IMG/VR virus record: IMGVR_UViG_3300042923_000601
Location: 182,690 to 246,689 of that record
Strand: one strand, 5' to 3'
DNA: 64,000 nucleotides
This document shows, in pieces, positions 7,968 through 52,902 of the stretch. Both the position numbers and the translations under genes were made by a program. How positions within the stretch are numbered: the stretch's first letter is position 1; every line of letters starts with the position of its first letter. Under the pieces are notes generated by a model, which ran no database searches, was not told the DNA's origin, and saw only the letters and a list, made by a program, of their open reading frames with translations.

Positions 7968-8117
7968 ATGGAAATTGTACCCGTATCTAAAATTTATCCA
8001 CCACAAGCGAACACCAAGAAACATGCCAACGAGAAATCGCCTAAACAAAATAAACCAAAGGATACCTCATTTGAAGGTATCCTTTCATCTATATTAAACT
8101 CAGAGGAGAATGAATAA
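7968..8117 (+). CDS. 49-aa hypothetical protein (not in ORF track)
   Basis: GAGGTG RBS; stop TAA overlaps ATG 8117 (TAATG coupling). Confidence 0.5.
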   Translation: MEIVPVSKIYPPQANTKKHANEKSPKQNKPKDTSFEGILSSILNSEENE

Positions 8118-14560: not shown

Positions 14561-15532
14561 ATGGCGGACATGCACCCTATACAATACAAACTTAAGTTGA
14601 TTAAAGAAGGTGTGTCACTAGATACCCTTAGCACAACATCTTCAAATTTTGATGTTATGAATGCTATGCGGTTGTCATTGTATGAGACACTGACACATAC
14701 CGAAGAAGTGAGTGTACTAACCGAGGCTGACGGACCTTCTGCTATGGATAAAATAAAAGATGCTATTAAAGCTCTTATACAACGGATTACAGCTTTTTTC
14801 AGTAAGATGACAGCTCAGCTCAAGGCGAACAATGACCCACGACAAGCGTTCGTTAAAAAGAATTTATCGATCTTAAAGGCGTATAAGGCAGGAGGGCTCT
14901 ACGATACTGGTGATGATCACCTACCCACTATTTCTATTCCGAAGAACCTGAGTAATACGGTGAATTTTTCTAAATTTTATTCAACTGTCGATACTGCCGT
15001 GAAGTATTGTGATGAAATAGTAGCTGGTAAGAGCCCAACGTACCCCTTTAGGTCTGTGGCTGGCAGGCATGAACCACGGCATACGAGCGAACACATCGCG
15101 TCTGATATGATGCAAGCGATATTTGGAGGATTTGCGACAGCTGATAGTGTAATGTCCTCTGTATACGGCAATATCTCTGCAATTAGAGTTGATCGTCTAC
15201 CCGACGTACCTAAACTGGCAGACTTGTTTCTGTCGGATTATGAAAAAGGGCTGGACAAATTGCACGAAATTGCCCCTGCTATTACGACCAGTCTTAATAG
15301 GGCCATAAATGCCTCATCGCAACATGTTCGTGACCCAAAAGACCCAGCTAGTCAAACAGTAGAATATCGGGATCACCGTTCAGCGCTGTATGGAGCGATT
15401 GATGCATACAACGCTATCATCAAATTAGTACACTCATTCATATCGACCGTCATGTACGGGTATAATATGATATATAAAGTATTACACGCGGCGGTTTCAT
15501 ATGTAAAAGGTCATGGTACTGCTGGCAAATAG
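14561..15532 (+). CDS. internal head (inner-body-like) paralog-family protein
   Basis: LYET/LTEA putative cleavage sites followed by amphipathic helix KIKDAIKALIQRITAFF, shared with the 26.7-36 kb paralogs. Confidence 0.65.
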   Translation: MADMHPIQYKLKLIKEGVSLDTLSTTSSNFDVMNAMRLSLYETLTHTEEVSVLTEADGPSAMDKIKDAIKALIQRITAFFSKMTAQLKANNDPRQAFVKKNLSILKAYKAGGLYDTGDDHLPTISIPKNLSNTVNFSKFYSTVDTAVKYCDEIVAGKSPTYPFRSVAGRHEPRHTSEHIASDMMQAIFGGFATADSVMSSVYGNISAIRVDRLPDVPKLADLFLSDYEKGLDKLHEIAPAITTSLNRAINASSQHVRDPKDPASQTVEYRDHRSALYGAIDAYNAIIKLVHSFISTVMYGYNMIYKVLHAAVSYVKGHGTAGK

Positions 15533-16335: not shown

Positions 16336-16992
16336 GTGACCAAATACATCGCAATTGAGGGCCTCGACGGCTCCGGGAAGGCTACGACATCGGACGAAGT
16401 TGCCCATATCTTAACAATACACGGGTATACCGTCCAAGTCGTGTCGTTCCCCATGTACCAAAAGTGGCATTCGGCACCTATACGAAACCATTTAAACAAT
16501 AAGGAAGGAGGTCTATTTGGGGATAACCCATATCTGATCTCCTTCCTTTATGCTTTTGATCGCGCGTGTTGGGCTTTCACGCATAAGCTTAAAAAGAAGC
16601 CAGACTATGTTATCTTCGATCGGTACGCCACCAGTAATATGGTATATCAGGCGATGAAAGTTGATACCGACGAAAAGAAATACCGACTGATCAAGTTCAT
16701 TAAGGCGCTGGAGTACGGCTTCTTTCGGATACCTAAACCCGATCAAGTATTCATGCTTGAAGTACCGGTAGATGTATCAATCGAAAGACTTAAACAGCGC
16801 GCTGTGCAAGACAGGTACGAGAACGAAGAAACACAGGAACGTGCCCGCCTGAATATGATGAAAGTGGGCAATTGGCTAGGCTGGATTCGTATCCCAACCA
16901 GTTCGTCTAATGGGAAACGATACAGTAAAGAAGTTATCGCCCGTATGATTGTCGGGCCTTTGAAATACAAACACACATCTAATGAGGAGTGA
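16336..16992 (+). CDS. tmk: thymidylate (dNMP) kinase
   Basis: IEGLDGSGKAT P-loop; SFP; DRYATSN; PDQVFML. Confidence 0.9.
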   Translation: MTKYIAIEGLDGSGKATTSDEVAHILTIHGYTVQVVSFPMYQKWHSAPIRNHLNNKEGGLFGDNPYLISFLYAFDRACWAFTHKLKKKPDYVIFDRYATSNMVYQAMKVDTDEKKYRLIKFIKALEYGFFRIPKPDQVFMLEVPVDVSIERLKQRAVQDRYENEETQERARLNMMKVGNWLGWIRIPTSSSNGKRYSKEVIARMIVGPLKYKHTSNEE

Positions 16993-17409: not shown

Positions 17410-19623
17410 TTAATTTGTGCCGTAGTAATAGTCGTTCATCATCTTGTCCAACTTGTGCTTTGGATATTTCTCCAGATTCAGCGTGTTGAACGTCTCATGG
17501 ATGGTATACAGGACAATCGCTTCATTCAGGATCGTTTTCTTATTCTCCAGAATGTCAACGTGTCCGCTGGACGCTGCTTCTTGTACATACTTACGGGAAC
17601 GACTTACTACCATAGCCTCGAACAAGGACTCAGGCTCATTCAGCCCGGTGTTACCAATACGAGCCTTACCAGCCGATTCTTCAAGAGAAGATTTCATCTT
17701 GTTGAGATCAGATGGAGTCAGCTTGTTCAGGAACTCCTGGTTCTCCTTGTCGCGCTTAGTGGCGCGTTTTTCTTCGTTTTCGATGACTTTAACAACCCGT
17801 TTTTTGATGATCTTGGTTGCATCGTCTTTACCGTTTGCCTTCGAGATGGTTTCCAGCAGCTCTCTTTCGTCGCTATCAAGGAAATCCAGCTCAGTAGGAT
17901 ATTGTCCTTCCTGCAGGCGGACGTGGATTGCATGAGGGATATTAGAAGTTGTCAAGCCATGAGTCTGGTCATAGAGAGCAGATTCCAGGCAAGCGCATTC
18001 CAAATTACCTTTCATGCAGGGGTTGGTTTGAATGGTTTTCTGCAGCACGTTCTTATCGGAATCGTCACCGGTGGTATCACGGACGACGGCACCGATAAAC
18101 CCGATTTCGTCAGCTGTTGCTTCAAACAATGTCAGATAGGACGCGCCGTCAAGGGCGGATTCAACCAGTTCTTCCATTGTACCGTGAGCATCTTCACGGA
18201 ATACTTTCTTCCCGTCGCCGTCTTTACCGGCAGCGAGGTAGCCAGAGAGTTTCTTTTTAGCTGCGGTGAGTTTTGCAATCTTCTTCTCGTCACCTTTAGC
18301 TTTCTTAATACCTTTATCCAAAATGGCGATAGCCTTTTCAACTTCACGAATTGCCGCGATGCGGTCAGAATCCTTTGTTGAACGGAGTGCACGTACTGCG
18401 GCATATCCAAAGACTGCAACCAAAGCTGCCAACGCACCTACTGTTTGTGTGTTATACACCACAAAGGATGGCAGTGCATCAATGAATTTTTGCATATACA
18501 GCTTACCCTTAGGGAGGGAGTAGCCTGCTTTAAGGCGTTCAGCATCAGAAGTTAGAGCTGTAATAAGAGCCTCTTCCTTATCCTCAACTTTCCCACCTGC
18601 TTCGGTCACATAGCCGCCGTTTTCAACTGCGAATATGATATCGTCAGCTGTTTCCAAGTTAAGCTCAGTGGATTCCTGAACTATACCAGCCTGAACAGCT
18701 GCTGCGGTGATCAGGTTTTGAACCTCACCTGTTCTGTCAATCAGGCTTTCCAGTCTGCTGAAAAGGTTCTGGTCGCCATTTGCTTCATTCGCTGCAACCA
18801 GTAACCGCGCTTGAATATCCTGAATATGTGCAATATACATCGACGCGTATTGTGCCTGTACTGGGAGTTTGATCGCGTCGGTTACTGCATTCAGGTACAA
18901 GTTCACGGTGAAGAGAACGGAACTAACGGAGAATCCCGGGATATTGAAAGCTTTGAAGCCCAGTGTAATCAAGTTGGCAACAGAGTCGCCCACTGTGATC
19001 GGAGCGTAGCTTTCAGTGTCCTGCAGTTTAGCGTTGATTGCTTTAGCGACATTAGAAACCGATCCCGCTTGATCCACTTCAGCCATATCCGATTCCGTGA
19101 AGGCACGGTAGGCACTGGATACCAGTTTAATGGTGGAGGAATCGCTGTAGTCGTTTTCCAGCAGGTGCTTGTAGAGTGCGCCGCTATGCTGGGCAAGGCG
19201 GTACGCAGATTCTGCAACGGAAGTCACGATAACGTTGGATTCCTGGATGTGCTTGTTGAAATCCTTAAAGGTCTTGATGTTGTTGTCACTTAGCACCTTG
19301 GTAAATGCAGACTCGAACATCGCTTTCAGCGGATGCGCGTAGTAATCCTTAGTCGATTCATCCAGAAGGAGTGAATCATGGAATACGGAGTAAACGGCTT
19401 CCTGTACAGCATAAATGGCAGCAGCGTCAACTGCATCAGCCTCGTTTACCCAACGTGTAAAGGCGTTGTTTTCCAGCATAGCGTATTCAGCTTCAAGTCC
19501 TTTGAGAGACTCGCTGATGAATTTAGCCTGGGCTTCTCCTTTGAGGCGCTGGTTTTCAATATCGGCTTTCTGACGGTTTCTCAAAGTAGATGCTTCGAGA
19601 ATGAATGAATCCATATCAAACAT
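17410..19623 (-). CDS. large head/prohead-core protein with many protease-type sites
   Basis: About 20 hydrophobic-x-E-(A/S/N) motifs (ILEA, ISES, VNEA, VQEA, IQES, VTEA, LFEA, LNEA...); late motif upstream. Confidence 0.6.
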   Translation of the reverse strand: MFDMDSFILEASTLRNRQKADIENQRLKGEAQAKFISESLKGLEAEYAMLENNAFTRWVNEADAVDAAAIYAVQEAVYSVFHDSLLLDESTKDYYAHPLKAMFESAFTKVLSDNNIKTFKDFNKHIQESNVIVTSVAESAYRLAQHSGALYKHLLENDYSDSSTIKLVSSAYRAFTESDMAEVDQAGSVSNVAKAINAKLQDTESYAPITVGDSVANLITLGFKAFNIPGFSVSSVLFTVNLYLNAVTDAIKLPVQAQYASMYIAHIQDIQARLLVAANEANGDQNLFSRLESLIDRTGEVQNLITAAAVQAGIVQESTELNLETADDIIFAVENGGYVTEAGGKVEDKEEALITALTSDAERLKAGYSLPKGKLYMQKFIDALPSFVVYNTQTVGALAALVAVFGYAAVRALRSTKDSDRIAAIREVEKAIAILDKGIKKAKGDEKKIAKLTAAKKKLSGYLAAGKDGDGKKVFREDAHGTMEELVESALDGASYLTLFEATADEIGFIGAVVRDTTGDDSDKNVLQKTIQTNPCMKGNLECACLESALYDQTHGLTTSNIPHAIHVRLQEGQYPTELDFLDSDERELLETISKANGKDDATKIIKKRVVKVIENEEKRATKRDKENQEFLNKLTPSDLNKMKSSLEESAGKARIGNTGLNEPESLFEAMVVSRSRKYVQEAASSGHVDILENKKTILNEAIVLYTIHETFNTLNLEKYPKHKLDKMMNDYYYGTN

Positions 19624-22345: not shown

Positions 22346-22356
22346 TATTTTCCCTC

Positions 22357-23445
22357 CTATATCCACCGTAGATAGAATCTACCGTTTGATAATTCAATCT
22401 TTGGAGCATTAACGAGTGGAACGCCTATTGTGTCATTTACCCTGTCATATGATGGGTAGTATGAACCAGTGTCGTCCAGTAATTTCATTACCTCGTCTGA
22501 CCGGGATTTCTTTGCAAATCCGGAGATCGTGTTTAATTCAGATAATACAACAGGGTCGAGAATGCCGCTCTTAGACTTCATTGCGTACTCAAAATTGATA
22601 GTATACTCAGAATGTGAGAGCTGATCCTTTGTCGTTGCAAATGCGCTGTCAGGGCGGTTCTTAGGGAATACACCCTGGAGCTTCTCCCAGTATACCAGCT
22701 CAGATCCGTCTGCTTTTGTTACAAGGTAATACATAGATACAGCATAATCCAGAATACCATGCTCGATGTAGTAATCCTTAGGAGCCATATCGCCCAAGAA
22801 CACCATTTCAATGTAATCTGTCCACAGGGCAATGGTCTTATATACCGGAAGGAATTTGCTATCATGTAAGGTCAGTGAGAAGGAACCCGCCGACCTAGAA
22901 TGTATCGCATGCTTCCCGTACTTGATCTTCATACCATGATGCGTTTCGCCCTTTTCGAGTGTATCCAGTGACTGATCCTCTGGACTAAACCCCGTGCAGA
23001 AGTTTGTGAAGATTGGCATGTATGCATTAGGGAACCCTGTGTTCTGCTGGAGCATAGCAAGGTTCTCTTTATCAACCGCCGTCCCGTTACGAGCAAGTTC
23101 CCTAAAAGCAAGCCGGGATGCTGTCTGTTGGTTCATGTTAAGCTGAGTTAGATTCTTTTCGTCAAAGATATTAAGGTCGGGTCTGGTCATGAAGATGTAT
23201 CCTCGATGTCCACCTGGCCATAGGTATCCTTCCGGTAAATCAAACCGGTTGAACTTCGTTAAGTGATGGAGATACCCATCACCACTAACTGAGTCGTCAG
23301 AGCTGAGCCCTTTACCGGGATATAAAAGCGCCTGACCATCTGCATTCATTGCAAACTGAGCAAGCGTACCGGAGTATTGCACTGGAGCTTTGGGTGTCAT
23401 CATTGATGCAGTACTGACCGTTTTACCGTCTACGATATTAGCCAT
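22357..23445 (-). CDS. virion structural protein (tail-tube-like baseplate component)
   Basis: YIFMTRPDLN and W..GVFP patterns of jumbo-phage tube-fold proteins; adjacent to the wedge gene. Confidence 0.55.
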   Translation of the reverse strand: MANIVDGKTVSTASMMTPKAPVQYSGTLAQFAMNADGQALLYPGKGLSSDDSVSGDGYLHHLTKFNRFDLPEGYLWPGGHRGYIFMTRPDLNIFDEKNLTQLNMNQQTASRLAFRELARNGTAVDKENLAMLQQNTGFPNAYMPIFTNFCTGFSPEDQSLDTLEKGETHHGMKIKYGKHAIHSRSAGSFSLTLHDSKFLPVYKTIALWTDYIEMVFLGDMAPKDYYIEHGILDYAVSMYYLVTKADGSELVYWEKLQGVFPKNRPDSAFATTKDQLSHSEYTINFEYAMKSKSGILDPVVLSELNTISGFAKKSRSDEVMKLLDDTGSYYPSYDRVNDTIGVPLVNAPKIELSNGRFYLRWI

Positions 23446-24151: not shown

Positions 24152-25291
24152 ATGATCATCGAACAGCTTATCACGTTCGGTAAGATGATGCAGAAAGAAT
24201 GGTCACTTATCACGAGCAAGACTCATGTCAACTTTGGTCAAAGTCCGACGCGGAATAAATCCATATCGTCACTTGCCAATGACAGTACTTATTTTTACCC
24301 GGTTGTAGGCTCGGAATACCTTTCCGCCGATGAACTGGTTATGCTCACTCGGGCATTTGAACGGTCGTATGCCGTATTCACCCGTACAGCATTCTCTCTC
24401 ATCCCGGCAGTTGAGGTTCCAAGTTTCACGAATGCCACCGTTCGTAACTACCTCACCCAGTTCCATACAAACATGAACACGGTTCCTAACTGGGGCGGTA
24501 CGATTGACAAGAATAATGGATTCACACTCAATGAAACGTCTCTTAATGAGGCATCAACGGGTGGCCCTGACCCTATCGGCGGTCCACTGGGGCCGATTGA
24601 AACAAACGTTAAACGGGCAGAGCCATTTAAAAAGGCAACTACTCTTTTTTCGGATTTGGATTGGAAGAAAGCAAACGATATGTTACCTACCACTATGCAA
24701 GTGCCTGTTAAATTTGTGTCTAGGGACACAAAGGCAGAGGCGGTTGTCGATGTTATGGTAAATATCAAGGCAACAATGCACCGCTCGGCGTCAAGCCCGC
24801 TGGTACAGGACATTGCCAACAGCGTTAACGGCAAGAGAGGACTTCTGAACTTCGTTAAATGGTTCTCCGGTGAACAAAAATCATTGTCGGACTTGCTGTT
24901 TGGTGTTAGCCAGATGAAGTTCGATATTCAGAATAAGAAAGCCAGCCCTTGGGTTGAGGCGTTTAAACGCCGCGCTCGTCTGGCTCAGGGTGGATCGGCT
25001 ATGCTGATGAACAACCTGAAACCAATCGCAACCCTTTGTGTAACCATGAACGAAGTTAACGCTCTGAAAACGCAATACGACATTGATGTTTTTAAAGACG
25101 TTAAGAAAATCATGGACGCTTACTACCTGCTCGGATTCTGCATCGTTGACCAAGTGAACGAAGTCGTATACGTTCGTTACGACTCACAGGTTGACTTTCA
25201 AGAGTTCCCATACAAAACACTGGAACGCGAAGCAGCCAGCCAAGACCGTACCCTTAAGGATATGGTTAAAGCTATGGGCGCACTTCGCTAA
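24152..25291 (+). CDS. virion structural (head) protein
   Basis: AAGGAGG RBS; internal LNET/LNEA sites; biased codon usage. Confidence 0.6.
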   Translation: MIIEQLITFGKMMQKEWSLITSKTHVNFGQSPTRNKSISSLANDSTYFYPVVGSEYLSADELVMLTRAFERSYAVFTRTAFSLIPAVEVPSFTNATVRNYLTQFHTNMNTVPNWGGTIDKNNGFTLNETSLNEASTGGPDPIGGPLGPIETNVKRAEPFKKATTLFSDLDWKKANDMLPTTMQVPVKFVSRDTKAEAVVDVMVNIKATMHRSASSPLVQDIANSVNGKRGLLNFVKWFSGEQKSLSDLLFGVSQMKFDIQNKKASPWVEAFKRRARLAQGGSAMLMNNLKPIATLCVTMNEVNALKTQYDIDVFKDVKKIMDAYYLLGFCIVDQVNEVVYVRYDSQVDFQEFPYKTLEREAASQDRTLKDMVKAMGALR

Positions 25292-25308
25292 TAAAGGAGG
25301 GTTATCCA

Positions 25309-26253
25309 ATGCACGATCAGTTGCTACTCTTTGAGCATATTAAAGAGCATTACGATGCTCCTATGCGGTCACGCTTTATGAGCATGACTGAAGCAGAGCA
25401 GGTTACGGTGGGGCGGAATCTGGTAGACAGAATCTATGTCACCATCGCCGAGAAGTATAATGAAGTCGATTTCGAGAATATTCCGGCATCCAAAGGTGAC
25501 ATCACCAAGCTGCCTGAGTATGCTAACCTCAAAGCGTCTCTTACCCTTCTGGCCGAGATCGAGAAAAGTTCGAATCAATCGATCCCGGAGATTAAGGTCC
25601 TGACTGACGCACTTCAATATTTGGAGATGTTCTCTAGCGACTTCTATATGGGATTCGTTAAGAAGAATGCTTCGATTATCATGACCTATAACCTTCTTGC
25701 AATGTCGGTTATTTGCGGGACATCCTTGATGATCTCCGTTCTGGTTGATTACGTCAACCTGGGTAACACCGACAGCGTACAGGTAATCATCAATACCAAA
25801 TACCGTAAAGGTCAAAAGTACCTACTGATCGATTCTTTGAATCAGTTCTGTGTACAGGCCAGAAACGGTGCATTCAAACGCAACCTTACTGCAATGGCTA
25901 AACCGGCTCCAATCCAAGAAGCTGTGCTTACATCCATTGCATTCTACTCTGCAGCTGTATTTGCAGCCTTCACTATTATCCCTCTGATTAAAGAATTGAT
26001 CTATCTCTTCTACTTCAGCCGGATGAAAATCAGTGAGGCTGCAAAAATTCAGGCTGATCTTCTGAATGCTAACATTCAGTCGGTTCAGGCTTCGGGGAAA
26101 GCGACAGATAAGATGGTTCGCATCCAAAGCTGGTTTGCGGATAAGCTGTCTAAGATTTCCCATGTATTCGCTTTTAACTATGAAAAGAATGAGCGGAAGG
26201 CACAGGCTGAAGCAAAAGCCAAGCTTACCCAATCCGATATCGTTCTCTTCTAA
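25309..26253 (+). CDS. virion protein with hydrophobic (possible membrane) helices
   Basis: MTEA and IQEA sites; IPASKGDITK; hydrophobic segment after IQEA. Confidence 0.6.
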   Translation: MHDQLLLFEHIKEHYDAPMRSRFMSMTEAEQVTVGRNLVDRIYVTIAEKYNEVDFENIPASKGDITKLPEYANLKASLTLLAEIEKSSNQSIPEIKVLTDALQYLEMFSSDFYMGFVKKNASIIMTYNLLAMSVICGTSLMISVLVDYVNLGNTDSVQVIINTKYRKGQKYLLIDSLNQFCVQARNGAFKRNLTAMAKPAPIQEAVLTSIAFYSAAVFAAFTIIPLIKELIYLFYFSRMKISEAAKIQADLLNANIQSVQASGKATDKMVRIQSWFADKLSKISHVFAFNYEKNERKAQAEAKAKLTQSDIVLF

Positions 26254-26282: not shown

Positions 26283-26314
26283 TTCCTCAAAGTTTATAGA
26301 TGAGAGGTGAGATC

Positions 26315-26758
26315 ATGTTTAATACAATCCTCGAAAATGCAACAATGCCCAAGCCATTGGTATTCCTTGGTGGCACGTGCGGCGATTCCAAGTGGCGCGA
26401 GGTACTCATGCCACAATTGGAGATCGATTACTTCAATCCGGTTGTCGATGACTGGAAGCCTGAGGATCAGGAAAAGGAACTTGAGGTTCGTGCTAAAGCG
26501 GACTATCTCCTTTACGTGATCACACCTAAGGCATCCGGTATGTATTCGGCGGCTGAGGTTGCAGATGACAGTAACAAGAGACCTAAGAAAACGATATTCT
26601 GCTATCTGGCAAGTGACGGTGGGTCAATATTCACAGCTGAACAAGTCAAGTCGATGGATTCAATCGGTAGACTGGTTGAGGCTAACGGTGGAACATGGCT
26701 TAAGTCACTGGAAGAGGTCGTCAAGACCTTAAACATGACGCCGTATTTGAATTTGTGA
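26315..26758 (+). CDS. nucleoside 2-deoxyribosyltransferase-like domain protein
   Basis: VFLGGTCGDSKWRE..YFNPVVDDW..E..YSAAEV pattern; N-terminal MFNTILENA extension. Confidence 0.8.
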   Translation: MFNTILENATMPKPLVFLGGTCGDSKWREVLMPQLEIDYFNPVVDDWKPEDQEKELEVRAKADYLLYVITPKASGMYSAAEVADDSNKRPKKTIFCYLASDGGSIFTAEQVKSMDSIGRLVEANGGTWLKSLEEVVKTLNMTPYLNL

Positions 26759-26773
26759 AAGGAGGAGTAACGA

Positions 26774-27727
26774 ATGTTTCATGATATTATCAGAGAAACC
26801 AACCAACTTTTTCATCCAGAAGGTATAACCGAATCTGTAACCGAAAGCCGGTACAATTTGCTTAGCTATCTGTCTGAAATGGCAACACTGCCTTTACATA
26901 CCCACGGGGTACTGTCCGAGGCCGATGTACCCGATATTGTCGGAAAACAGAAAGGTATCATTCGCCGGTTGATTGAATTTTTTGCCCGGATGATTCACAA
27001 TATCAAAACCCGTATTACGGCTCGGTTCCAGTCGGCTGAGGAGCGTCTCAATACGCTTCAGAAGTATCTGAGAACCATCGATCATCGAGCCATTCAAATC
27101 AATACCCGTATGAAGATTAATTCTTTCGATCGGGTTCTGGATACGGTGTTTAAAATCGAAGATGAACTTAGAGCAAACCAGCTCAATAACCTCATGGAGA
27201 CATTCTTTAAAATGGGGAAGGTTGAGAAGGGGATGGAAGTTATCAAAGCCGCTGCAACCAAGGGTAAATCCATTGCAGAACGGTTTTCTGGCTACGTTCC
27301 TTCTATGGTGAAATACAACGGCAAGAATGTGGAGCAAATCCGCGATGAGTTACTCGGTGAGATTGGCCCAACGACCAATATTCAAACCGAGAAATTCTTC
27401 TCCAACCTTGAACGTGGCAAGAAGTTTAAGAACGAACTGGATAAACTAGTGGCTGAATACAGTAAGGTATTGAACGGTCTGTCGGCAGCCGCTGAGGCAT
27501 CTGATAAGATGCAATCAATCGGTCCTAACGGTCAGCACATGTTCAATAGCATTGTAAACACCATGACATCGTTCTTTAACCGCAACGTTCATTTGGTTAC
27601 AAGTCTGGTACTTGAAATTATTGATACAACTCAAACCGCAGCATTTCGAATGGTAGCAACTGCTAACACCCTCGGTCTGGCAGGTGCAGCTGAAGTGTTG
27701 CGCTCAGTAAGACCCGATAAGAAATAG
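26774..27727 (+). CDS. internal head paralog-family protein
   Basis: MFHDIIRET leader; ITES/VTES/LSEA; IIRRLIEFF helix. Confidence 0.65.
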   Translation: MFHDIIRETNQLFHPEGITESVTESRYNLLSYLSEMATLPLHTHGVLSEADVPDIVGKQKGIIRRLIEFFARMIHNIKTRITARFQSAEERLNTLQKYLRTIDHRAIQINTRMKINSFDRVLDTVFKIEDELRANQLNNLMETFFKMGKVEKGMEVIKAAATKGKSIAERFSGYVPSMVKYNGKNVEQIRDELLGEIGPTTNIQTEKFFSNLERGKKFKNELDKLVAEYSKVLNGLSAAAEASDKMQSIGPNGQHMFNSIVNTMTSFFNRNVHLVTSLVLEIIDTTQTAAFRMVATANTLGLAGAAEVLRSVRPDKK

Positions 27728-27741
27728 AAGAGGTGACGATC

Positions 27742-28584
27742 ATGTTCGACTTCAATTCAGGTGAAGTTTACAAAAAGGTTCCAGGGCTTACACTTGAAGA
27801 TGCTATTACAGCTATTCAGGAGAGTAGCTTGTCTCTATCAACTACACCGGCTGGTGACCAGAACACCGGTCAGTCCCTGCTTGTAAGAGTGAAAGAAATC
27901 TTTGAAAAGATTAAAACCAAGGTCATGGCTTTTGTCAACGGATTATTGAAAAAGCTCCGGCTTAATTCTGCGGGCAAGCTTGACTTCATTAAGAAAAATG
28001 AAGCCCGCATTAAGAACTACTCCAAGCCTCATATGATATCCATGCCTAAGAATTTGGCCAATCCACTGAAGCCATACAGTGCAAAGCTAATATGGGCACG
28101 CATTGTGGATGCAGGCCAGCGCATGGGTGTTATTGGCACACTGGCTAGGGATGAAGAAACGATCAGAAAGATGCATGCTAAGTATACCGATGAGATCATC
28201 ATGAATGTACTGGCTGGTATGGTTACTGATCCCGATGCAAAACTCCTTACAGATGAAATCATCTATGCTGAATACGTCGGTAAGGATGCGAGCATTGATA
28301 TCAGTAAACTGAACAAGGAAGCCTTGATCCAACAGGCTGTACAACTCCATGCTGACTTTGAGGAATTTGCTAAGCAGCGCGGCGAATACTCCAAGTTTTT
28401 GGATACCATAACTCGCGATAACAAATTGTTTGAAGCCGAAAACCGGGTGGCGACCAATATGTTGGTAACGCTGGTTTCCCGGTTTGTAACAGCGACTCTT
28501 CGTTTCACATCGGTTATGAGTAGTGTGTTGATGAAGCGATTCAATGTAATCTATTCTATCCTTCACCGCATGGCTACTCACTAA
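27742..28584 (+). CDS. internal head paralog-family protein
   Basis: MFDF leader; IQES; VKEIFEKIKTKVMAF helix. Confidence 0.65.
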   Translation: MFDFNSGEVYKKVPGLTLEDAITAIQESSLSLSTTPAGDQNTGQSLLVRVKEIFEKIKTKVMAFVNGLLKKLRLNSAGKLDFIKKNEARIKNYSKPHMISMPKNLANPLKPYSAKLIWARIVDAGQRMGVIGTLARDEETIRKMHAKYTDEIIMNVLAGMVTDPDAKLLTDEIIYAEYVGKDASIDISKLNKEALIQQAVQLHADFEEFAKQRGEYSKFLDTITRDNKLFEAENRVATNMLVTLVSRFVTATLRFTSVMSSVLMKRFNVIYSILHRMATH

Positions 28585-28604
28585 TCTAAAAAGGAGGAAC
28601 TACT

Positions 28605-29396
28605 ATGTTTAATTTGACATACCAGCCCAATGGTAAAATCTCAGCCATCGACAATAATCTGCGACCTATCAGTATCCAAGAAGCAGTCTTTGAAATCGGG
28701 CAGCTGCGTGTACAACTGATCACAGAAGCCGACGGTGAGGATAAGAAGGCGAAGTTCAAGCGGATCGTCAAAGACCTGATTGCGAAGATCAAAGCCTTCT
28801 TTAAAGGGCTTGCCCTTAAGATTACAAAATCAGCGACTGAACGGGAGAAGTTCGTTCTTGAGAACAAGGGAACGATCCTTAAATACAGCCCTGGTGATGG
28901 CACAGCCAGTATCCCATCGCACCTGTTGAAACCTTCGGTTAAACTAACCACGGGTTTGATCATGTCCGCAACCAGCAAAGTCATTACCCACCCGGACGGG
29001 TTTAACAGTGAGCATGCGATGGAGAACGTACTCAAAATTATCGCCCCATCATACAAAGAAGGGATATCCATATCTGAATTCTTCAGTTTTCTTCATGGGG
29101 AGCAGACGGATGTCCCTCTAAAAAATATTTCTCCGGCGCAATTAATTGATTCATTCCTATCGGACATGAAGTTCCTTAAGGAGCTTGACAAGTGGGAAAC
29201 CAATTTTATTTCATACGCTGAAAGACCAGGCAGTTATGAGATGGATCATGAAAATCCAGAGCTTGTGATTTCGCATATTATTCAATTCGGTATCTCCATC
29301 ACTGATCTTGTATACCGGACTGTCATACATGCGACTAATGTGAAGTTCTCCCTTCTCAAAGCAATGGAATCTGCAGCTAACGATCGCGACAACTAA
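28605..29396 (+). CDS. internal head paralog-family protein
   Basis: IQEA/ITEA; IVKDLIAKIKAFF helix. Confidence 0.65.
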   Translation: MFNLTYQPNGKISAIDNNLRPISIQEAVFEIGQLRVQLITEADGEDKKAKFKRIVKDLIAKIKAFFKGLALKITKSATEREKFVLENKGTILKYSPGDGTASIPSHLLKPSVKLTTGLIMSATSKVITHPDGFNSEHAMENVLKIIAPSYKEGISISEFFSFLHGEQTDVPLKNISPAQLIDSFLSDMKFLKELDKWETNFISYAERPGSYEMDHENPELVISHIIQFGISITDLVYRTVIHATNVKFSLLKAMESAANDRDN

Positions 29397-29416
29397 TATT
29401 AAAGGAGGAAACCAAA

Positions 29417-30499
29417 ATGTTTACTTACGATAAAGAAGTTGTAAACTCCATTCAAGAGACCTCGGGTAACATGTCGCTGTACGAGTCTGTTCTTGCCCTG
29501 CATGAGGCGACTATCAATCCTCTGCTTACAATGAACACCCTCTCCAGTGCATACCGTCTTCAATTGGAGTCTGTTTTGGAAGAAAACGGCCGTGTGTTTA
29601 ACGATGCCGTAAAGGCGGTTTTGACCGAAGCGACAAAGGATATGACGAACCAGCTGACTGCAGATGCTGAGTCGGTGCTGTCTTCTGTGAAGAAGATTAG
29701 ATCGACTCTTTCCACTACCTTGAGTCAGATTAATAAGCAAAACAATGAGGTTGTCACCAAATACGAACCCCTGATTCGCCAGTTGGATGCATCTCGCTCG
29801 GCGTACACGGTTCGTAGTTACAACCTTTCCAACCTTGCAACTAGCGACATCCTTGCTCGGGTTATGTCCTGCGTAGCCAATGATCTGAATCTTGATCCTA
29901 AGCGCATGACAGAACCAACTGCGACCCTTGAGCAGTTGATCGCTGATTACAACAAAATGGGGCAGGATGCTGTACACTGTTTGAAACGCGCCGTCCTTGG
30001 TGTCGCTAATACCGTGGACGTGTCCCAGAACTTCTTCCAAATGGTCACCGATGCGTTGGTTAGCCCAACAGCAACCGAGACCCGTTCGTTCACCAACGAC
30101 ACGTTTGGTACACTGGCAAACATGACAGACGATTTCCAAGCGTCTGAAATGGATGCTGTTGTTGCTGAGCTTGAGAATCACATCAATGAAATCAGAGACC
30201 TGAAGCGCATCAACCTGTCCAGCACAGGTAATGAGTACGGCAACTCTGTCATGGTTCAGTATCTGATTACCCGGAAGATGGCCATTTGCACTGCTCTGAG
30301 TCTGGTTGCTGAGGTTCTTAACACGAAAGCATCCGTCTACGAACAGATGTCAGTTGACTACCGGAAGATCATTATTAACACTTACGAGAAGCTGATTGCT
30401 CCAGCTGGCGGCTTTGTACAGGAAGCATACGATCCACAATCGGATGACCTGATCGGTCTATTCCATATGGAATGTGCTTCCAGTAGCGATTTATTCTAG
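29417..30499 (+). CDS. internal head protein
   Basis: IQET, LYES, LHEA, LTEA and C-terminal VQEA. Confidence 0.6.
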   Translation: MFTYDKEVVNSIQETSGNMSLYESVLALHEATINPLLTMNTLSSAYRLQLESVLEENGRVFNDAVKAVLTEATKDMTNQLTADAESVLSSVKKIRSTLSTTLSQINKQNNEVVTKYEPLIRQLDASRSAYTVRSYNLSNLATSDILARVMSCVANDLNLDPKRMTEPTATLEQLIADYNKMGQDAVHCLKRAVLGVANTVDVSQNFFQMVTDALVSPTATETRSFTNDTFGTLANMTDDFQASEMDAVVAELENHINEIRDLKRINLSSTGNEYGNSVMVQYLITRKMAICTALSLVAEVLNTKASVYEQMSVDYRKIIINTYEKLIAPAGGFVQEAYDPQSDDLIGLFHMECASSSDLF

Positions 30500-30572
30500 T
30501 AACAGTACATTGATCTCTGTCGATGCAAACATACGATAAATCAAATCCATCATTTTTAGGAGGTAAACACAC

Positions 30573-31721
30573 ATGTTCGATTTCTCTACAGCAGCTCCTG
30601 CTGCATCTGCACCTGTGGGTGAGCTGACATTCGAATCTTTCAACTGGGCATTCCCGGAAGAATTCAGCACTATCCTGCAGGAACAAACGTCCCGCATTGA
30701 GCGCACTGTCGGTGACTACCGCTCTGTAATGGCAGCTGTTCTGACTGAAAGCGCTGGCGCTATCAATGAGAACGTTGTTGCTGTCATGGAAGCAGCTAAC
30801 GAAGACGCTCCTAACAAAGTTATGGCCGCCCTTCAAAAGCTGAAAGCCATGATCATCAATCTGGCAAGAAACATCATGACTCGCATTCAGACTATGATTA
30901 CGAGCAATGAAAAAGCTCTTGCTCTGCGTGAAAAGGCTAAGGATTCCGGCGCTGTCGGTAAACTGAAAGCCGAAATGTACGACTACCATCTGGATGCTGT
31001 CAACCTTGACGCACTGGCTGGTAACTGGAGCATCATGTACAAAAACAGCCTGTACGATATCTCCAAACCATACAACGAAGGTAATGCCGCAGCTCTGGAT
31101 GCTGAAATCGCAAAAGTATCCGCTGCTAAGCATCAGGCTATCGTACATGTGGTTGCTGCGAAAGCAGTTAAAGGCACCCTGCCTGAAGGCGACTTCTCCA
31201 AAGAAGTAGCAAAACAACTTCGTGGCGGCGGTGAACGCAAATCCGTAACGTTCGACATGCACTACTTCGACGTTCTGGAACAGTTCCCTAAAATTAAAGA
31301 ATCCATCCAGAAAGCTTTCACCGCAATGGAGAAAGAAGTTGACCTGGCAATGGGTATCGTTAAAGAGAAACTGGGCCAGGTGAAGAAGGATGCCAAAACA
31401 CCGGAAGAGAAGAAACATGCAAGCGGCTATGCTGCATATGCAATTGCGACTCGCAAAGTTCTCTCCGCTGGTCTGGATGGCGCAGTTCTCCTGAACAACC
31501 TGAAACTGCAAGCTGCGGTTCAACAGGCAAACGAAGCTAAAGCATTCATCGTGAAAGCTGCTAACTTCAAAGCCGGTAAAGCTGAAGAAGGTTCGCTGCA
31601 GGAAAGCGTAATCGAGCCATTCCTGCCATACCTGGACCTGCCTGACAATGATGACACTTCCATCAGCGCCATTGCTGGCCTGAACGAAAGTGCAGCAGCA
31701 AAAACACCATTCGCTTGGTAA
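30573..31721 (+). CDS. abundant internal head protein (paralog family)
   Basis: Strong codon bias; LTES, INEN, VMEA, C-terminal LQES/LNES; own AACA-N5-TA motif (30528..30538) and terminator. Confidence 0.7.
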   Translation: MFDFSTAAPAASAPVGELTFESFNWAFPEEFSTILQEQTSRIERTVGDYRSVMAAVLTESAGAINENVVAVMEAANEDAPNKVMAALQKLKAMIINLARNIMTRIQTMITSNEKALALREKAKDSGAVGKLKAEMYDYHLDAVNLDALAGNWSIMYKNSLYDISKPYNEGNAAALDAEIAKVSAAKHQAIVHVVAAKAVKGTLPEGDFSKEVAKQLRGGGERKSVTFDMHYFDVLEQFPKIKESIQKAFTAMEKEVDLAMGIVKEKLGQVKKDAKTPEEKKHASGYAAYAIATRKVLSAGLDGAVLLNNLKLQAAVQQANEAKAFIVKAANFKAGKAEEGSLQESVIEPFLPYLDLPDNDDTSISAIAGLNESAAAKTPFAW

Positions 31722-31739
31722 TCCATCCGCTGTAAATAG

Positions 31740-31767
31740 CACACTGCCCTCCGGGGCAGTGTGTTTT
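31740..31767 (+). terminator. intrinsic terminator
   Basis: cacactgccc..gggcagtgtg + tttt. Confidence 0.8.
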
Positions 31768-31787
31768 AACACGTTTAGCATTCAGGA

Positions 31788-31799
31788 AACAGTCCATTA
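31788..31799 (+). promoter_or_regulatory. late-type promoter motif AACA-N6-TA
   Basis: aaca-gtccat-ta. Confidence 0.6.
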
Positions 31800-31823
31800 A
31801 TACTAGAAGGGAGGCATCGGACC

Positions 31824-32783
31824 ATGTTCGCAGAATATTCAGAACCCACATGGGTATGGGAATCAATAGACGTCTCATCTCTCATAGCGGAAGCCTTTGA
31901 ATCACACGACGAACAGTTCCAGTGTTTTATGGAAACTGCTAATGTTTCAATTATGTATGAGACTTCTTCCATCACCACTCGCTTTACTCAAATTATTGAA
32001 GGTGTTATTCGCCTCATTCGAAAAGCGATTGCACAGTTTATCGCGGGTCTGGATGTTGCCGTCCGGCGAACGGAGGCGCTGATACGAAAATACGAGCCTC
32101 AAATTAAGGCTTTGACTGATGATGATTTAGCAGGTATGGAGTATGACAATGTGACGTATACCATATACCCTGCTGTGCCTGGTGATGTTGACCTGTCTAT
32201 CATCGACTGGGCGTTAAAACAGATGTCATCTGTTATTACCCGAGATACCATGACAACGATCAGGGAACGGGTTGATGCTAAAGTGCCATTTATCCGTGGG
32301 CAGATGATGGGTAAATCCTCACCTGTATCCGAGGTTCAAATTGACAGTACGGTCAAAACCTTATTCAAGAATCCTAGGTTGGTCACTGAAATACCGTTAA
32401 CCAAAGAGGTTCTGGATCGGTTAGTATCCGACCTTAAGATGTATTCCACGGTTCGTTCATCAGTTGAACGTAACGGTGAGGAAGCAGCCAAAACGCTGTC
32501 GAAGTATAAAAAGCTTATTAATTCTATCTACTCTGAGCAGTATACACCTGATGAAAACAAACTGAAGGTGACTGTAAACGGAGTAACATCCGAGGCATCA
32601 GCAAACGGGGCTGTATATCACCGGGAGGCTCAGATGTACTTGACTAACGTGGTACTGGAACTCACATCCTTGTACTCAACTTTAATCAACGAGAAACTTA
32701 TTGCGTTAAAAGATAAGTTTGAGCATGATCAATTAATGCTCAGAGCAGTTATTGTTCTTATTCAAGATGGAGGGAGAAAGTAG
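31824..32783 (+). CDS. internal head paralog-family protein
   Basis: VWES, IAEA, MYET; IIEGVIRLIRKAI helix. Confidence 0.6.
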   Translation: MFAEYSEPTWVWESIDVSSLIAEAFESHDEQFQCFMETANVSIMYETSSITTRFTQIIEGVIRLIRKAIAQFIAGLDVAVRRTEALIRKYEPQIKALTDDDLAGMEYDNVTYTIYPAVPGDVDLSIIDWALKQMSSVITRDTMTTIRERVDAKVPFIRGQMMGKSSPVSEVQIDSTVKTLFKNPRLVTEIPLTKEVLDRLVSDLKMYSTVRSSVERNGEEAAKTLSKYKKLINSIYSEQYTPDENKLKVTVNGVTSEASANGAVYHREAQMYLTNVVLELTSLYSTLINEKLIALKDKFEHDQLMLRAVIVLIQDGGRK

Positions 32784-32785
32784 CT

Positions 32786-33451
32786 ATGTTTAATGACATA
32801 ATTACACCTGAGGCCAAGTATCCTGTATTTGTAATTATGAGCCACAGTGGTTCGCTTGTATCGACTGTTATCCGCCGGGTTACAGGCCAACCATACAGCC
32901 ATGCCTCTGTGTCATTTGACCCGTCTCTTAAAGGGATGTATAGCTTTGGGTCGGGGAAACTATCAAGAGTCAACTACATTGTAGGCGGATTTGCCAAAGA
33001 AAACTTCAAAGACTTCAAGTTGTTTGATCCGGAGACTACGTATTCAATGTACGTTGCCTTTGTTGATCGTTATGCTAAAGACGCAATGATTAGCCGACTT
33101 GAAGAAATCACTGCGGCTAACGCTACACGGGAACTCAAGTACAACTTCATTGGACTTTTATATAATGCATTCGGTAAGGTACACGACAGAGGCGATGTGT
33201 ATTTCTGCTCACAGTTTGTTGATACCATTTTGAAAGCCGGAGACATTGGGTTCAAGAAACACTCCTCGCTGGTTAGACCTGCCGACTTCCGTAACTTGAA
33301 GGGATTTCAGTTTGTTACTAAAGGGTTATCGGCGAATTATGATGAGGTTAAGGTTAGAAATAAAGTCCAGGCTATTTCGGAGAAAGAAAACATCACGCCG
33401 TTGTACGAATCCACTATGCCAGCGAATGGCGGGTTCTTCGAATTGATCTAG
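32786..33451 (+). CDS. permuted papain-like (NlpC/P60, YiiX/YaeF C92-type) enzyme
   Basis: YSHASVSFD (His) precedes YNFIGL..YFCSQFV (Cys), the permuted order. Confidence 0.75.
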   Translation: MFNDIITPEAKYPVFVIMSHSGSLVSTVIRRVTGQPYSHASVSFDPSLKGMYSFGSGKLSRVNYIVGGFAKENFKDFKLFDPETTYSMYVAFVDRYAKDAMISRLEEITAANATRELKYNFIGLLYNAFGKVHDRGDVYFCSQFVDTILKAGDIGFKKHSSLVRPADFRNLKGFQFVTKGLSANYDEVKVRNKVQAISEKENITPLYESTMPANGGFFELI

Positions 33452-33460
33452 CCAAAACGC

Positions 33461-33491
33461 AAAAAAAAAACGACCAGCTAGATGCTGGTCG
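33461..33491 (-). terminator. terminator of the HNH gene
   Basis: cgaccagc..gctggtcg hairpin with A10 on the plus strand (U-tract on the minus strand). Confidence 0.7.
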
Positions 33492-34371
33492 TCGTAGTAA
33501 ACTGGTATTGGGTGTAGGTATGTCCCCAATATTTTAATTCTGCATCTTGACGCGCTCGCACTGCATCTTCTAAAGAATCGTATATGCCGACCTTAGTCAG
33601 CTTAGTGTTCTTATCAACGAAGATACCAACGAGATACGTGCCACCTGGGCGTTCGTATACCCCGGCATACCCAGTTTTACTACGGGTAGCTCTCCTATTA
33701 CGCCCCTGTTCTTGACGTGTTGCCCATACACAATTATCTTTACTATAGTTACCGTTAACATCAAGCCTATCAATCGTGTGATAGCTAGATGGGCGATCCC
33801 CCATGTCACGAATAAAGTCGTCAAATGATTCCCACTCAACACGAATGCCGCGCCCGCCGTAGTACTCATAATCCAAACACTTAGGGTTATTACAACGGTA
33901 ATTAATGGCGTTCCATGTTTTCAGTTCAGGTGTTCTGATGTATTTCCCGTATTGAGATTTCTTCGAGCATCCGCATGTTTTAACAGTACCGGATACTAAT
34001 GAACCACTCGGTACGACAACGATTTCACCGCAGTCACATATGCACTGCCACAAGGCGGCTCCTTTTTTATTTTGACCAACCATCTCAATGACTGTCAGGC
34101 TGTTAAATTTGCGACCGGTGTAATCCTTGATGCGGATGCATCCGCATGATTTAGTATGTCCTATTCGGAACATTACACCCGATACTTCAATCATATTGCC
34201 GCATATGCATCTTGCATACCACATGTGACGGTCTTTCCTTTTACGCGAATAGCCTATAATCGTAAGCTTTTCAAGTTTATGTCCTTTGATATTTTGCATT
34301 TGGCGATATTTTGCAACAGCTCTACTCGTCCTTTCCTCAAGGTAGGACTCTTTAAATGCAAGATTCAACAT
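33478..34371 (-). mobile_element. free-standing HNH-AP2-type homing endonuclease gene
   Basis: Two W.C.C.CG..SCGC-type repeats; RC.NP..YYGGRGI.V.W; TIDRLDVNGNYSKDNCVWAT..Q.RN; C-terminal AP2-like domain; antisense insertion in the head cluster. Confidence 0.85.
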
Positions 34372-34393
34372 GATGCCACCCCTTTATAATGGT

Positions 34394-34413
34394 ATTCATG
34401 TGCATGATATGTA
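34394..34413 (-). promoter_or_regulatory. early-type promoter variant for the HNH gene
   Basis: minus strand tacatatcatgcacatgaat. Confidence 0.45.
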
Positions 34414-34458
34414 CCTCTATTTTATTACAATGACAAGTTATAAAGGAGATGAAGAATT

Positions 34459-35211
34459 ATGTTTAGAGAGTTAATTAGAGAAGCTGTGTCTGATCCGAAT
34501 AATTTCAATCAAGATGGTAAGATCGCTGCACTTGAGAATGAATTTGGGCATGATCCAGTTGCGTTGGCGGTAAGCTATTCTATTGCTACCAGCCATGAAT
34601 ACTCTACACCTAACGTTGCAGCTGCTATTGCGTTCGTTAAGGATTATGACTGGGAGCAAAGTAGCTGGCGGGTTGACGGCTTGCAAGGCATTAACAAGCC
34701 AATTAATGAAGCTAAGGTCAAAGAGATTGCAAATACGATCAGGGAAAAAGGAAACGACTTCCCGTTGGTTACCGTTGATAAGTTCCATGGTATCACACCC
34801 CAGACACCGGGCAAGCTTTTGCTTATGGATGGTCATCACCGGCAGCACGGTCTTGAGGAAGTTGGCCATGAAACCACCCCAATATATAAGGGAACCTATA
34901 AAGGCCATGACCGGTTGAATGAATCCAGTGATATCGTACTGGAAGCCTTCTTCGGTAAGGGCGAAGTTGCAACTAAACTGCGGTACCTCAATGAGGCCGC
35001 TAAACGGAAGAAAACGATCGAAAAACTCCCGTTGTCTGAGGAGGAGCAGGCTGCAGTGACAGCAAAATATGGACAGCCCGAGTGCAGTTTTCATAAGAAT
35101 GCTGCGACCGGCAAGTACTTCTGTATGACACACAGATATAAGTCAGACGAATTCGATTCGCCGACTGACATCCCAGTTTCTGATGTACAGTTTGTATCCA
35201 GTACATCCTGA
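34459..35211 (+). CDS. ParB/Srx-like domain protein with head-type leader
   Basis: KVKEIANTI..PLVTV..LLMDGHHR; MFRELIREA leader; LNES/VLEA/LNEA before a small C-terminal domain. Confidence 0.7.
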   Translation: MFRELIREAVSDPNNFNQDGKIAALENEFGHDPVALAVSYSIATSHEYSTPNVAAAIAFVKDYDWEQSSWRVDGLQGINKPINEAKVKEIANTIREKGNDFPLVTVDKFHGITPQTPGKLLLMDGHHRQHGLEEVGHETTPIYKGTYKGHDRLNESSDIVLEAFFGKGEVATKLRYLNEAAKRKKTIEKLPLSEEEQAAVTAKYGQPECSFHKNAATGKYFCMTHRYKSDEFDSPTDIPVSDVQFVSSTS

Positions 35212-35225
35212 TAGGAGTGAATCAC

Positions 35226-36185
35226 ATGATAACGATATATGAGTCGTATGAAATTGAATCTGCCCGCCGTGCGATCATGTACGAGGCCAGTATTCTTACA
35301 ATGAAATCATCGCTCCTTGAGGCTGCCATCACTGCACAACAGCGTGATCTGCTGACAGAGGAGACCCAAGAATCACGAAATCGGTTAGCCGAAGCCGTTC
35401 AACGAATGATCGAGGCGATCCGTAAGCTTACTCAAAAGTTCCAGCACATTGCAGCTACGATGGTGGCTCGCAATGAAAAGTGGCTGGCATCGGTAAAGAC
35501 TAATATCTCTCCGGAGACAATCCGGGATAACTACTCCTTTACGATGTATCCATACTGGACAAATATCCGCGAGGCTGCGACGATGTCTATCCCGTCTTTC
35601 CGGGAGTCAGATTCCACTCTGCTGGATACGCTTCGCGATGCGACTTCTTTTAAAGAGACGTATTTCAAGAAGCTCTTTGTGAATAGCAAGGAAGGTGGCA
35701 CTAGCTTTGATCCCAAGGGGTATTTCCGGGGCGGGGCTGATAAGGTTAACCTTGATAAGCGAGGATTGATCAGTCGCCACACCCAAATGCTATCCTTCAT
35801 TGAGGGGTATGCGGAGACTGTGAAGCGAGTGACCGAGTCTAATAAGCAAATCATGGAGATTCTGGAGCAGGCTTCGATTAAAATTAAATCGGCTCCTCTG
35901 CAGGAATCCAACTTCTTACTTGAAACGGTCATGATGATCCTTGAGGATGGTAAACCTGTTACATCAGGTGAGGTTGAACGAGACAACCCGGATGATAAGG
36001 ACAAGAAGACCGGTTCAAATGGAATATCCGCAAGAGAACTCGCCACAACACGCCAGACATATGGGCAGGTATGCTACGGTGTAAACGCTGCTCGTATGAT
36101 GATCTTGGAAGAGTGCTATGACAACTATGTCAAGGCACTATCTATGGCGCTTGTGAATAAGGTAAAAACAAAAAAACAAGACTAA
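35226..36185 (+). CDS. internal head paralog-family protein
   Basis: IYES, MYEA, LLEA, LQES; AVQRMIEAIRKL helix. Confidence 0.65.
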   Translation: MITIYESYEIESARRAIMYEASILTMKSSLLEAAITAQQRDLLTEETQESRNRLAEAVQRMIEAIRKLTQKFQHIAATMVARNEKWLASVKTNISPETIRDNYSFTMYPYWTNIREAATMSIPSFRESDSTLLDTLRDATSFKETYFKKLFVNSKEGGTSFDPKGYFRGGADKVNLDKRGLISRHTQMLSFIEGYAETVKRVTESNKQIMEILEQASIKIKSAPLQESNFLLETVMMILEDGKPVTSGEVERDNPDDKDKKTGSNGISARELATTRQTYGQVCYGVNAARMMILEECYDNYVKALSMALVNKVKTKKQD

Positions 36186-36209
36186 GAGGGATTTCCCTCT
36201 TAGTCTTTT
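36171..36209. terminator. bidirectional terminator
   Basis: aagactaagaggg-attt-ccctcttagtctt. Confidence 0.8.
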
Positions 36210-52635: not shown

Positions 52636-52902
52636 CTAGACATTAGCAATGGTGTCTTCAATTTGTTCGCGTGTCATGCTGCTAATGTCTGCATCACCGT
52701 TAATGATTGCGTCCAGAGCCTGATCCAGCTCAGACAATTCATCGTCAGAAACGGTGTCGCCGTCAACCATGGAATCCAGATCATCCATATCAACGTCGTC
52801 ATCACCCAGATCGAGTGCGTCACCAGCGGCTTCAACCATCAAGCCCAGTTGGTCTTTTTCGACTTGGCTTTCATAGAGTGCTTTAGCCAGTTCTCCAAAC
52901 AT
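52636..52902 (-). CDS. small very acidic protein with head-type leader (scaffold-like)
   Basis: MFGELAKALYES..MVEA; Asp-rich. Confidence 0.65.
   Translation of the reverse strand: MFGELAKALYESQVEKDQLGLMVEAAGDALDLGDDDVDMDDLDSMVDGDTVSDDELSELDQALDAIINGDADISSMTREQIEDTIANV

Follow-up and report, generated by a model that had tools for sequence, protein, structure and literature searches.

A common Met-Phe leader on unrelated enzymes of a giant phage, probably a capsid-targeting propeptide of the T4 type

The final 64 kb of the 246,689-bp IMG/VR contig IMGVR_UViG_3300042923_000601 (the window, 64,000 nucleotides) contains an array of genes at 26.3-36.2 kb in which three unrelated enzymes, and most of the structural-type proteins around them, begin with a similar short N-terminal leader that opens with Met-Phe. 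This leader is probably a capsid-targeting propeptide of the T4 type, an interpretation that is drawn from sequence comparison and held with moderate confidence. Such a leader would bind to the assembling prohead core, and the protein behind it would become an internal head protein; a Glu-specific prohead protease would then trim most of the leaders after a hydrophobic-x-Glu sequence at positions 6-8. The array would be a cassette of seven distant internal-head-protein-like paralogues and three captured enzymes (an NDT-like, a C92 papain-like and a ParB/sulfiredoxin-like protein), which would be carried in the virion and might act as soon as the next infection begins. We infer that the leader binds the prohead core and is cleaved, and likewise that the enzymes are ejected and act in the host. 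The window comes from a giant phage that has a multisubunit RNA polymerase and whose nearest cultured relatives, at about 34% protein identity, are AR9/PBS1, the Staphylococcus phages SA1, DC4 and S6, Listeria LPJP1 and Yersinia phiR1-37. The array is also present in four related contigs (L002, L006, L003 and L004, in which the ParB-like protein is 58, 51, 38 and 39% identical, respectively).

With gene starts chosen by Shine-Dalgarno support, all nine plus-strand genes between 26315 and 35211 begin with Met-Phe (26315, NDT-like; 26774; 27742; 28605; 29417; 30573; 31824; 32786, papain-like; 34459, ParB-like). This bears out a sequence-only reading of the region, which had described near-identical leaders on unrelated enzymes and Met-Phe starts on nearly every gene of 26.3-34.5 kb; the leaders that it quoted from neighbouring genes are likewise present, at 26774, 19623 (minus strand) and 52902 (minus strand). 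Over the whole array (26315-36185), nine of the ten genes start in this way, compared with three of the 59 other Shine-Dalgarno-supported genes in the window (Fisher p=3.7e-8), where Phe accounts for 4.4% of all residues. That the Met-Phe starts were mis-called was considered and rejected: the upstream alternatives at 26300 and 27733 are without ribosome-binding sites. Orthologues in the related contigs likewise begin right at the Met-Phe, which also counts against mis-calling.

The short class of leader (n=26) follows the consensus M-F-x-D-[IL]-[ILF]-x-E-[AS], so that the motif proposed in the sequence-only reading, MF..(I/L)I.E|A, is present but was drawn slightly too narrowly. In 21 of the 26 there is a Glu at position 7 or 8, with I, L or F two residues earlier and Ala or Ser after it, and the five exceptions either have no Glu or carry Thr or Pro two residues before it. 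A longer Met-Phe leader is found on six structural paralogues. The Met-Phe start is kept in the orthologous arrays of L002, L003, L004 and L006, which are 38-60% identical. Between paralogues the leader codons vary synonymously (TTT/TTC, ATT/ATC/ATA, GAA/GAG), from which it follows that selection acts on the leader peptide. A second leader type, of about 15 residues and ending (K/R)-(L/I)-x-x-I-x-E-G, occurs on the window gene at 14570-15532 and on genes of L003 (4964, 5248), L004 (3367, 3612, 7307, 7642, 7980) and L006 (3634, 10711); one paralogue family mixes the two, with the second type on some members and Met-Phe on others.

In the NDT-like and papain-like enzymes the comparisons identify the leader as an addition ahead of the catalytic fold, because the cellular homologues of both start directly at that fold. 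The sequence-only reading had proposed to check whether homologous enzymes lack the leader, and in the cellular members of these two families it is indeed absent. Among the 150 best of the 1516 NDT-like homologues found at E<=0.001, nearly all have their N-terminus two residues short of the fold's first strand, a point that corresponds to residue 16 of the query. In the papain-like family the catalytic His lies mostly at residue 29-32, where seven of the nine homologues named as bacterial have it; in the window protein it is at residue 39 and in two AR9-like phage contigs at 48-50. The orthologue alignments of both enzymes run from a conserved leader through a linker that is variable in sequence and length to a conserved domain, and profile comparison of the enzymes with the array paralogues found residues 1-10 only to be shared. 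For the ParB-like protein no cellular full-length homologues were found; in its leader, M1, F2, E8 and A9 are invariant in six orthologues.

The same comparisons indicate that the leader is portable and lineage-specific. The families that carry the Met-Phe form include the NDT-like, papain-like and ParB-like enzymes, a P-loop NTPase (L004, by Pfam), a 122-residue module of no known family (P0005) and several structural families. In L004 (9359-10861) and in P0005 a tagged module upstream forms a single reading frame with the ParB-like gene, and the ParB-like protein keeps its own leader internally. The L004 fusion also keeps a ribosome-binding-like site before the internal ATG. The papain-like domain of three AR9-like contigs (L007, L106 and L107) has a different leader, ending L-x-E-S and then L-L-L, and this leader is common to an adjacent small protein that is itself homologous to the C-terminal module of the window ParB-like protein. 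In all three contigs the papain-like gene sits inside the capsid-scaffold-protease cluster, at or up to three genes downstream of the gene for the Peptidase_S77 (T4 gp21-type) prohead protease. The head cluster of AR9 contains the small tagged protein g113, the tagged g115 (annotated as a virion protein) and the tagged zincin g118. In L029, which is more distantly related, homologues of the two genes preceding the window array are followed by an array with another common N-terminus, and this array is within 10 kb of the L029 S77 protease.

The end of the short leader matches the L/I-x-E motif of T4 gp21 (PMC9026906). This protease cuts after the Glu, and the first ten residues of IPIII suffice for packaging (PMC9026906; PMC5694885). 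Proteases of the gp21 type are present in all of the nearest cultured relatives (AR9, PBS1, BpSp, the Staphylococcus giant phages, LPJP1 and phiR1-37); the published BpSp proteome holds no cleavage data. A generic hydrophobic-x-Glu-small motif within the first 35 residues was also tried and is uninformative, being present in 23% of internal 35-residue windows, and because it is so common the position-specific consensus and its conservation in orthologues were relied on instead. The paralogues have extra [LIVM]-[TLQ]-E-[AST] sites at residues 11-75, with 11 observed against 0.9 expected from other window proteins, for a motif that was defined after the data were seen. An L/I-T-E-A-(D) motif occurs at residues 18-70 of the proteins encoded at 25309, 26774, 28605, 29417, 30573 and 14570 and has been retained by their orthologues; the propeptide may really be longer and mature at this site.

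The setting of the array points to the virion. Just 5' of it lie three genes with matches to AR9 g212, g214 and g215, respectively, and the 30573 gene of the array has a weak match to g216 (BLASTP E=7e-4 in a small database); in the AR9 record g214-g216 are listed as virion proteins. The seven non-enzyme members form a network of distant paralogues, three of which are nearest to Atlas clusters carrying PF12699, the family of phiKZ internal head proteins. For the 30573 protein, the sole paralogue also matched by structure, the comparison with PF12699 clusters gave 0.92 on features and a TM of 0.54 on structure, while hhalign of array proteins to SPN3US gp53/54 gave at most 30% probability. The resemblance to phiKZ internal head proteins is best taken as a lead from models. 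The word 'head' thus draws on homology to AR9 proteins annotated as virion components and on likeness to phiKZ internal head proteins by language model and structure. 'Virion' is the safer term for the context of the array, because a tail-tube-like gene lies about 3 kb upstream.

Several observations weigh against a cleaved capsid-targeting propeptide. That tail-tube-like gene (19688-22366, minus strand) is upstream of the AR9 g212 homologue, and the AR9 record does not mark the leader-bearing g113 or g118 as virion proteins. The PF12699 link fails tests with hidden Markov models, with no Pfam hit at E<=1 for 19 array members and relatives. The window does not contain the prohead protease and major capsid genes of this phage, and PHROG scans covering 40 of its proteins gave neither. 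Nor were they located by two pattern scans and one profile search that went further: profiles of AR9-clade proteases and capsid proteins, run against IMG/VR and the protein collection, recovered many other giant phages and not the contigs of the window, L003, L004 or L006. The motif statistics are partly post hoc and come from related sequences. L004 and L006 have NDT-like leaders that lack the Glu, as does the papain-like leader of L006, and the window's own papain-like leader has Thr two residues before a Glu (Glu9) that opens the first strand of the model. Because some leaders are without Glu and that of the papain-like enzyme borders the first strand, cleavage after Glu cannot be universal. 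In T4, different residues serve targeting and processing, and when the cut site has an Asp the leader is no longer cut but still targets (PMC9026906; PMC5694885); the leaders without Glu still keep the M-F-x-D-hydrophobic-hydrophobic part. The sequence-only reading is supported in part: its core, a portable T4-type packaging tag, is well supported by the addition to the NDT-like and papain-like enzymes, the other cargo, the swap of leaders and the position outside the predicted fold, and is weakened by the missing protease and by the orthologues that have no Glu.

The identities given earlier to the NDT-like and papain-like enzymes hold, that of the ParB-like protein probably does too, and in the window each of the three has one catalytic domain. 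The 26315 protein matches Pfam PF15891 (Nuc_deoxyri_tr2) over residues 14-96, with 42.9 bits against a cut-off of 30 (E=6.9e-11). The closest non-phage relatives of this domain, at 50-60% identity, are N-terminal domains of bacterial proteins of 1200-2300 residues, which also hold several TIR domains together with WD40, LRR or TPR repeats (P0089, P0106, P0112, P0136, P0156). Several TIR domains combined with such repeats are typical of conflict systems, and a role for the NDT-like enzyme in the degradation of nucleotides or signals is plausible because its relatives have this architecture. The relationship suggests exchange between host conflict systems and phage cargo.

The papain-like protein (32786) has 83 homologues, and His39 and Cys141 are invariant in 65 sequences. 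Its Pfam score (13.8) is under the cut-off of 27. The structural model (pLDDT 85.7), in which residues 1-8 are coil, has 3kw0 and YiiX (2if6) as its top Foldseek hits and sole significant PDB neighbours (probability 0.94-1.0); these are a Bacillus cereus cysteine peptidase and E. coli YiiX, which place the enzyme in the permuted papain-like C92 group. If packaged, an amidase of this kind could have the cell wall or proteins of the host as its target. All top Foldseek hits of the ParB-like protein (34459) have the ParB/sulfiredoxin fold, from a weak model (pLDDT 56) and with weak sequence E-values, and D124, G125, H127 and R128 are invariant (a D-G-x-H-R motif). For ParB-like domains among late phage genes, a role as nucleases or NTPases that are injected has been proposed, and P1 DdrB is the precedent for packaging (PMC5512222). 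P0002, which is 93% identical to the window protein, has an insertion of about 135 residues between the ParB/sulfiredoxin part and the C-terminal module. This Cys/His-rich module (residues about 185-250) also occurs in AR9-like phages as a stand-alone, leader-tagged protein of 65-82 residues.

These enzymes invite a further reading of the array as an effector cassette, in which any gene that comes to stand behind the tag becomes cargo, and an immune-type NDT-like domain, a ParB-like nuclease or NTPase and a cysteine peptidase, injected with the DNA, would disarm host defences (based on nucleotide signals or otherwise) before the phage is expressed. This reading is possible, though on present evidence unlikely.

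The alternative that survives best is that the leader is an address or docking peptide for some other destination, such as a tail or baseplate assembly site, a membrane site or a dedicated chaperone. It fits the location of the array, about 3 kb beyond the tail-tube-like gene and shortly after the AR9 g212 homologue, as well as an AR9 annotation that reads only 'virion protein' and the scans in which the phage's own protease was not found. Yet the leader ends in a motif cut by head proteases of the gp21 type, a tagged enzyme of AR9-like phages lies inside the capsid-scaffold-protease cluster and the paralogues resemble internal head proteins, all of which makes another destination rather improbable. 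Only a little less probable is that the proteins are packaged by means of the leader and do their work inside the head or as it assembles, for example on the DNA that it contains or as core proteins that are degraded afterwards, without being delivered as effectors. DNA or nucleotides could be substrates for ParB-like and NDT-like activities, and in T4 several proteins of the core are fragmented and disappear from the head (PMC5694885). Against this, the T4 internal proteins, Alt and the ejection proteins of giant phages do reach the host (PMC9026906, PMC5694885), and a peptidase would have no obvious substrate inside the head.

The common start could also be a relic without function, inherited by the tandem paralogues and gained by the enzymes when they were inserted in frame into paralogue genes. 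The structural members are distant paralogues and in-frame fusions do occur at the locus, but a relic is hard to reconcile with a leader that is conserved across orthologues 38-60% identical while the linker varies and the codons drift synonymously, or with the different leader that the papain-like enzyme has in another lineage, and we consider it very unlikely. An expression signal, that is, a second-codon or downstream-box effect on the translation of late genes, would suit genes that all have strong Shine-Dalgarno sites and close spacing, but it is scarcely credible given the synonymous nucleotide variation, the conservation that reaches Asp4, the hydrophobic residues 5-6 and Glu8, and the retention of the leader internally in fused reading frames.

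The features of the array and of its surroundings are collected in Table 1.

Table 1. Array genes, other leader-bearing genes of the window and related modules in other contigs
Feature	Position	Strand	Remarks
NDT-like enzyme, 147 residues	26315..26758	+	Leader residues 1-7, then variable linker; catalytic fold from about residue 14-16
Array paralogue, short Met-Phe leader, internal-head-protein-like	26774..27727	+	Nearest named Atlas clusters carry PF12699
Array paralogue, long Met-Phe leader	27742..28584	+	hhalign 98% probability to family of 28605 gene
Array paralogue, long Met-Phe leader	28605..29396	+	Atlas PF12699 lead
Array paralogue, long Met-Phe leader	29417..30499	+	hhalign 96% probability to 30573 family
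Array paralogue, long Met-Phe leader	30573..31721	+	Weak AR9 g216 match; Atlas PF12699
Array paralogue, long Met-Phe leader	31824..32783	+	
Permuted papain-like (C92, YiiX-type) cysteine peptidase/amidase	32786..33451	+	Leader residues 1-9
HNH homing endonuclease, outside the leader system	33478..34371	-	phrog_374, E=1e-78
Probable ParB/sulfiredoxin-fold protein with C-terminal Cys/His module	34459..35211	+	Leader residues 1-8
Last array paralogue, without Met-Phe start	35226..36185	+	Hydrophobic-x-Glu sites near N-terminus
Bidirectional terminator, 13-bp stem, closing the array	36178..36207		
Two genes 5' of array, homologues of AR9 g214 and g215	24152..26253	+	BLASTP 1.8e-22 and 1.8e-11
737-residue protein, Met-Phe leader ending I-L-E-A	17410..19623	-	No family hit
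88-residue acidic protein, Met-Phe leader; adjoins virion structural protein gene	52636..52902	-	
Paralogue of 27742 and 28605 genes, outside array; second leader type ending I-x-E-G	14570..15532	+	hhalign 97%
Stand-alone Cys/His module beside prohead protease gene	AR9 g113 (L008 6251-6448); L007 9416-9658; L107 8439-8687		

The HNH endonuclease is the sole gene without a leader in 26315-35211. It sits between the papain-like and ParB-like genes on the opposite strand, with its own terminator (33469-33493), and since it is not found at the corresponding position in L002 and L006 it is a recent mobile insertion. On the plus strand inside the array there is no strong terminator-like site (stem of at least 10 pairs). 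Elsewhere in the window there are two further tandem paralogue pairs, one of AAA-type ATPases (8117-9370 and 9595-10860) and one of small proteins with near-identical N-termini (59134-59697 and 59697-60236, minus strand), each pair about 37% identical. AR9 and PBS1 are uracil-DNA giant phages; the window has a thymidylate-kinase-like gene (16336-16992), and the AR9-like L007, L106 and L107 have genes for uracil-DNA glycosylase inhibitors (Pfam UDI). A megablast of the region against 50,697 phage records gave no DNA-level match, tblastn with one array paralogue gave no match, and neither did a metagenome scan with the ParB-like profile.

A tag of this kind belongs to an already known class, that of capsid-targeting propeptides, and the literature searched holds no earlier description of one for this clade. 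If the interpretation as a capsid-targeting propeptide is true, the T4 principle also holds in a deep, uncultivated lineage of giant phages that has AR9/PBS1 as relatives, and address tags can be read from genomes as a common N-terminus ending hydrophobic-x-Glu on genes near head genes. Such a simple rule would allow one to predict which of the 'hypothetical' enzymes encoded by giant phages enter the host along with the DNA, a group very difficult to recognise by other means, and the short tags may serve to load foreign proteins into the heads of giant phages of Gram-positive hosts. Three candidate pre-packaged enzymes are named here whose activities can be assayed, and the link between the NDT-like domain and TIR-rich proteins is a concrete lead on the exchange of host immunity genes and phage cargo.

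The closest parallel is with the capsid-targeting sequence of T4, found on IPI-III and Alt and cut by gp21. In both cases a leader of 8-10 residues is common to the N-termini of otherwise unrelated proteins, hydrophobic positions are followed by hydrophobic-x-Glu and a small residue, and the set of cargo varies among related phages. That targeting and cleavage are separable in T4 (PMC9026906) fits the leaders without Glu in the lineage of the window. The window leader, M-F-x-D-hydrophobic-hydrophobic-x-E, is not that of T4, and it is known here from sequence alone, in a giant phage distantly related to AR9/PBS1. About ten tagged genes stand in one co-directional array, which is unlike T4, and the cargo includes NDT-like, C92 and ParB/sulfiredoxin enzymes, whereas that of T4 consists of small basic proteins.

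The internal head proteins of phiKZ and SPN3US (PF12699) likewise form diverged paralogue families, with N-terminal propeptides that have several sites ending in Glu, and the SPN3US paralogues gp53 and gp54 have identical N-termini (PMC5694885). The phiKZ sites have S, A or G two residues before the Glu and the propeptides are often more than 100 residues long, whereas the window leaders have I, L or F there and, on the enzymes, are 7-9 residues long. The polyvalent proteins, such as P1 DdrB, resemble the cassette in that ParB-like, peptidase and nucleotide-processing domains are encoded by late or virion genes and are expected to pass into the host together with the DNA (PMC5512222). Their domains are joined in one giant polypeptide, whereas those of the window are separate small tagged proteins, with two-module fusions only in L004 and P0005. 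Finally, the head cluster of AR9/PBS1 and their metagenomic relatives, which has a gp21-type protease and a gp23-type capsid protein, also contains scaffold-like and small proteins that share a lineage-specific leader, ending L-L-(E/D). It differs from the array of the window in the sequence of this leader and in that AR9 is without the papain-like and NDT-like genes and has only g216 and g217 at the position of the array.

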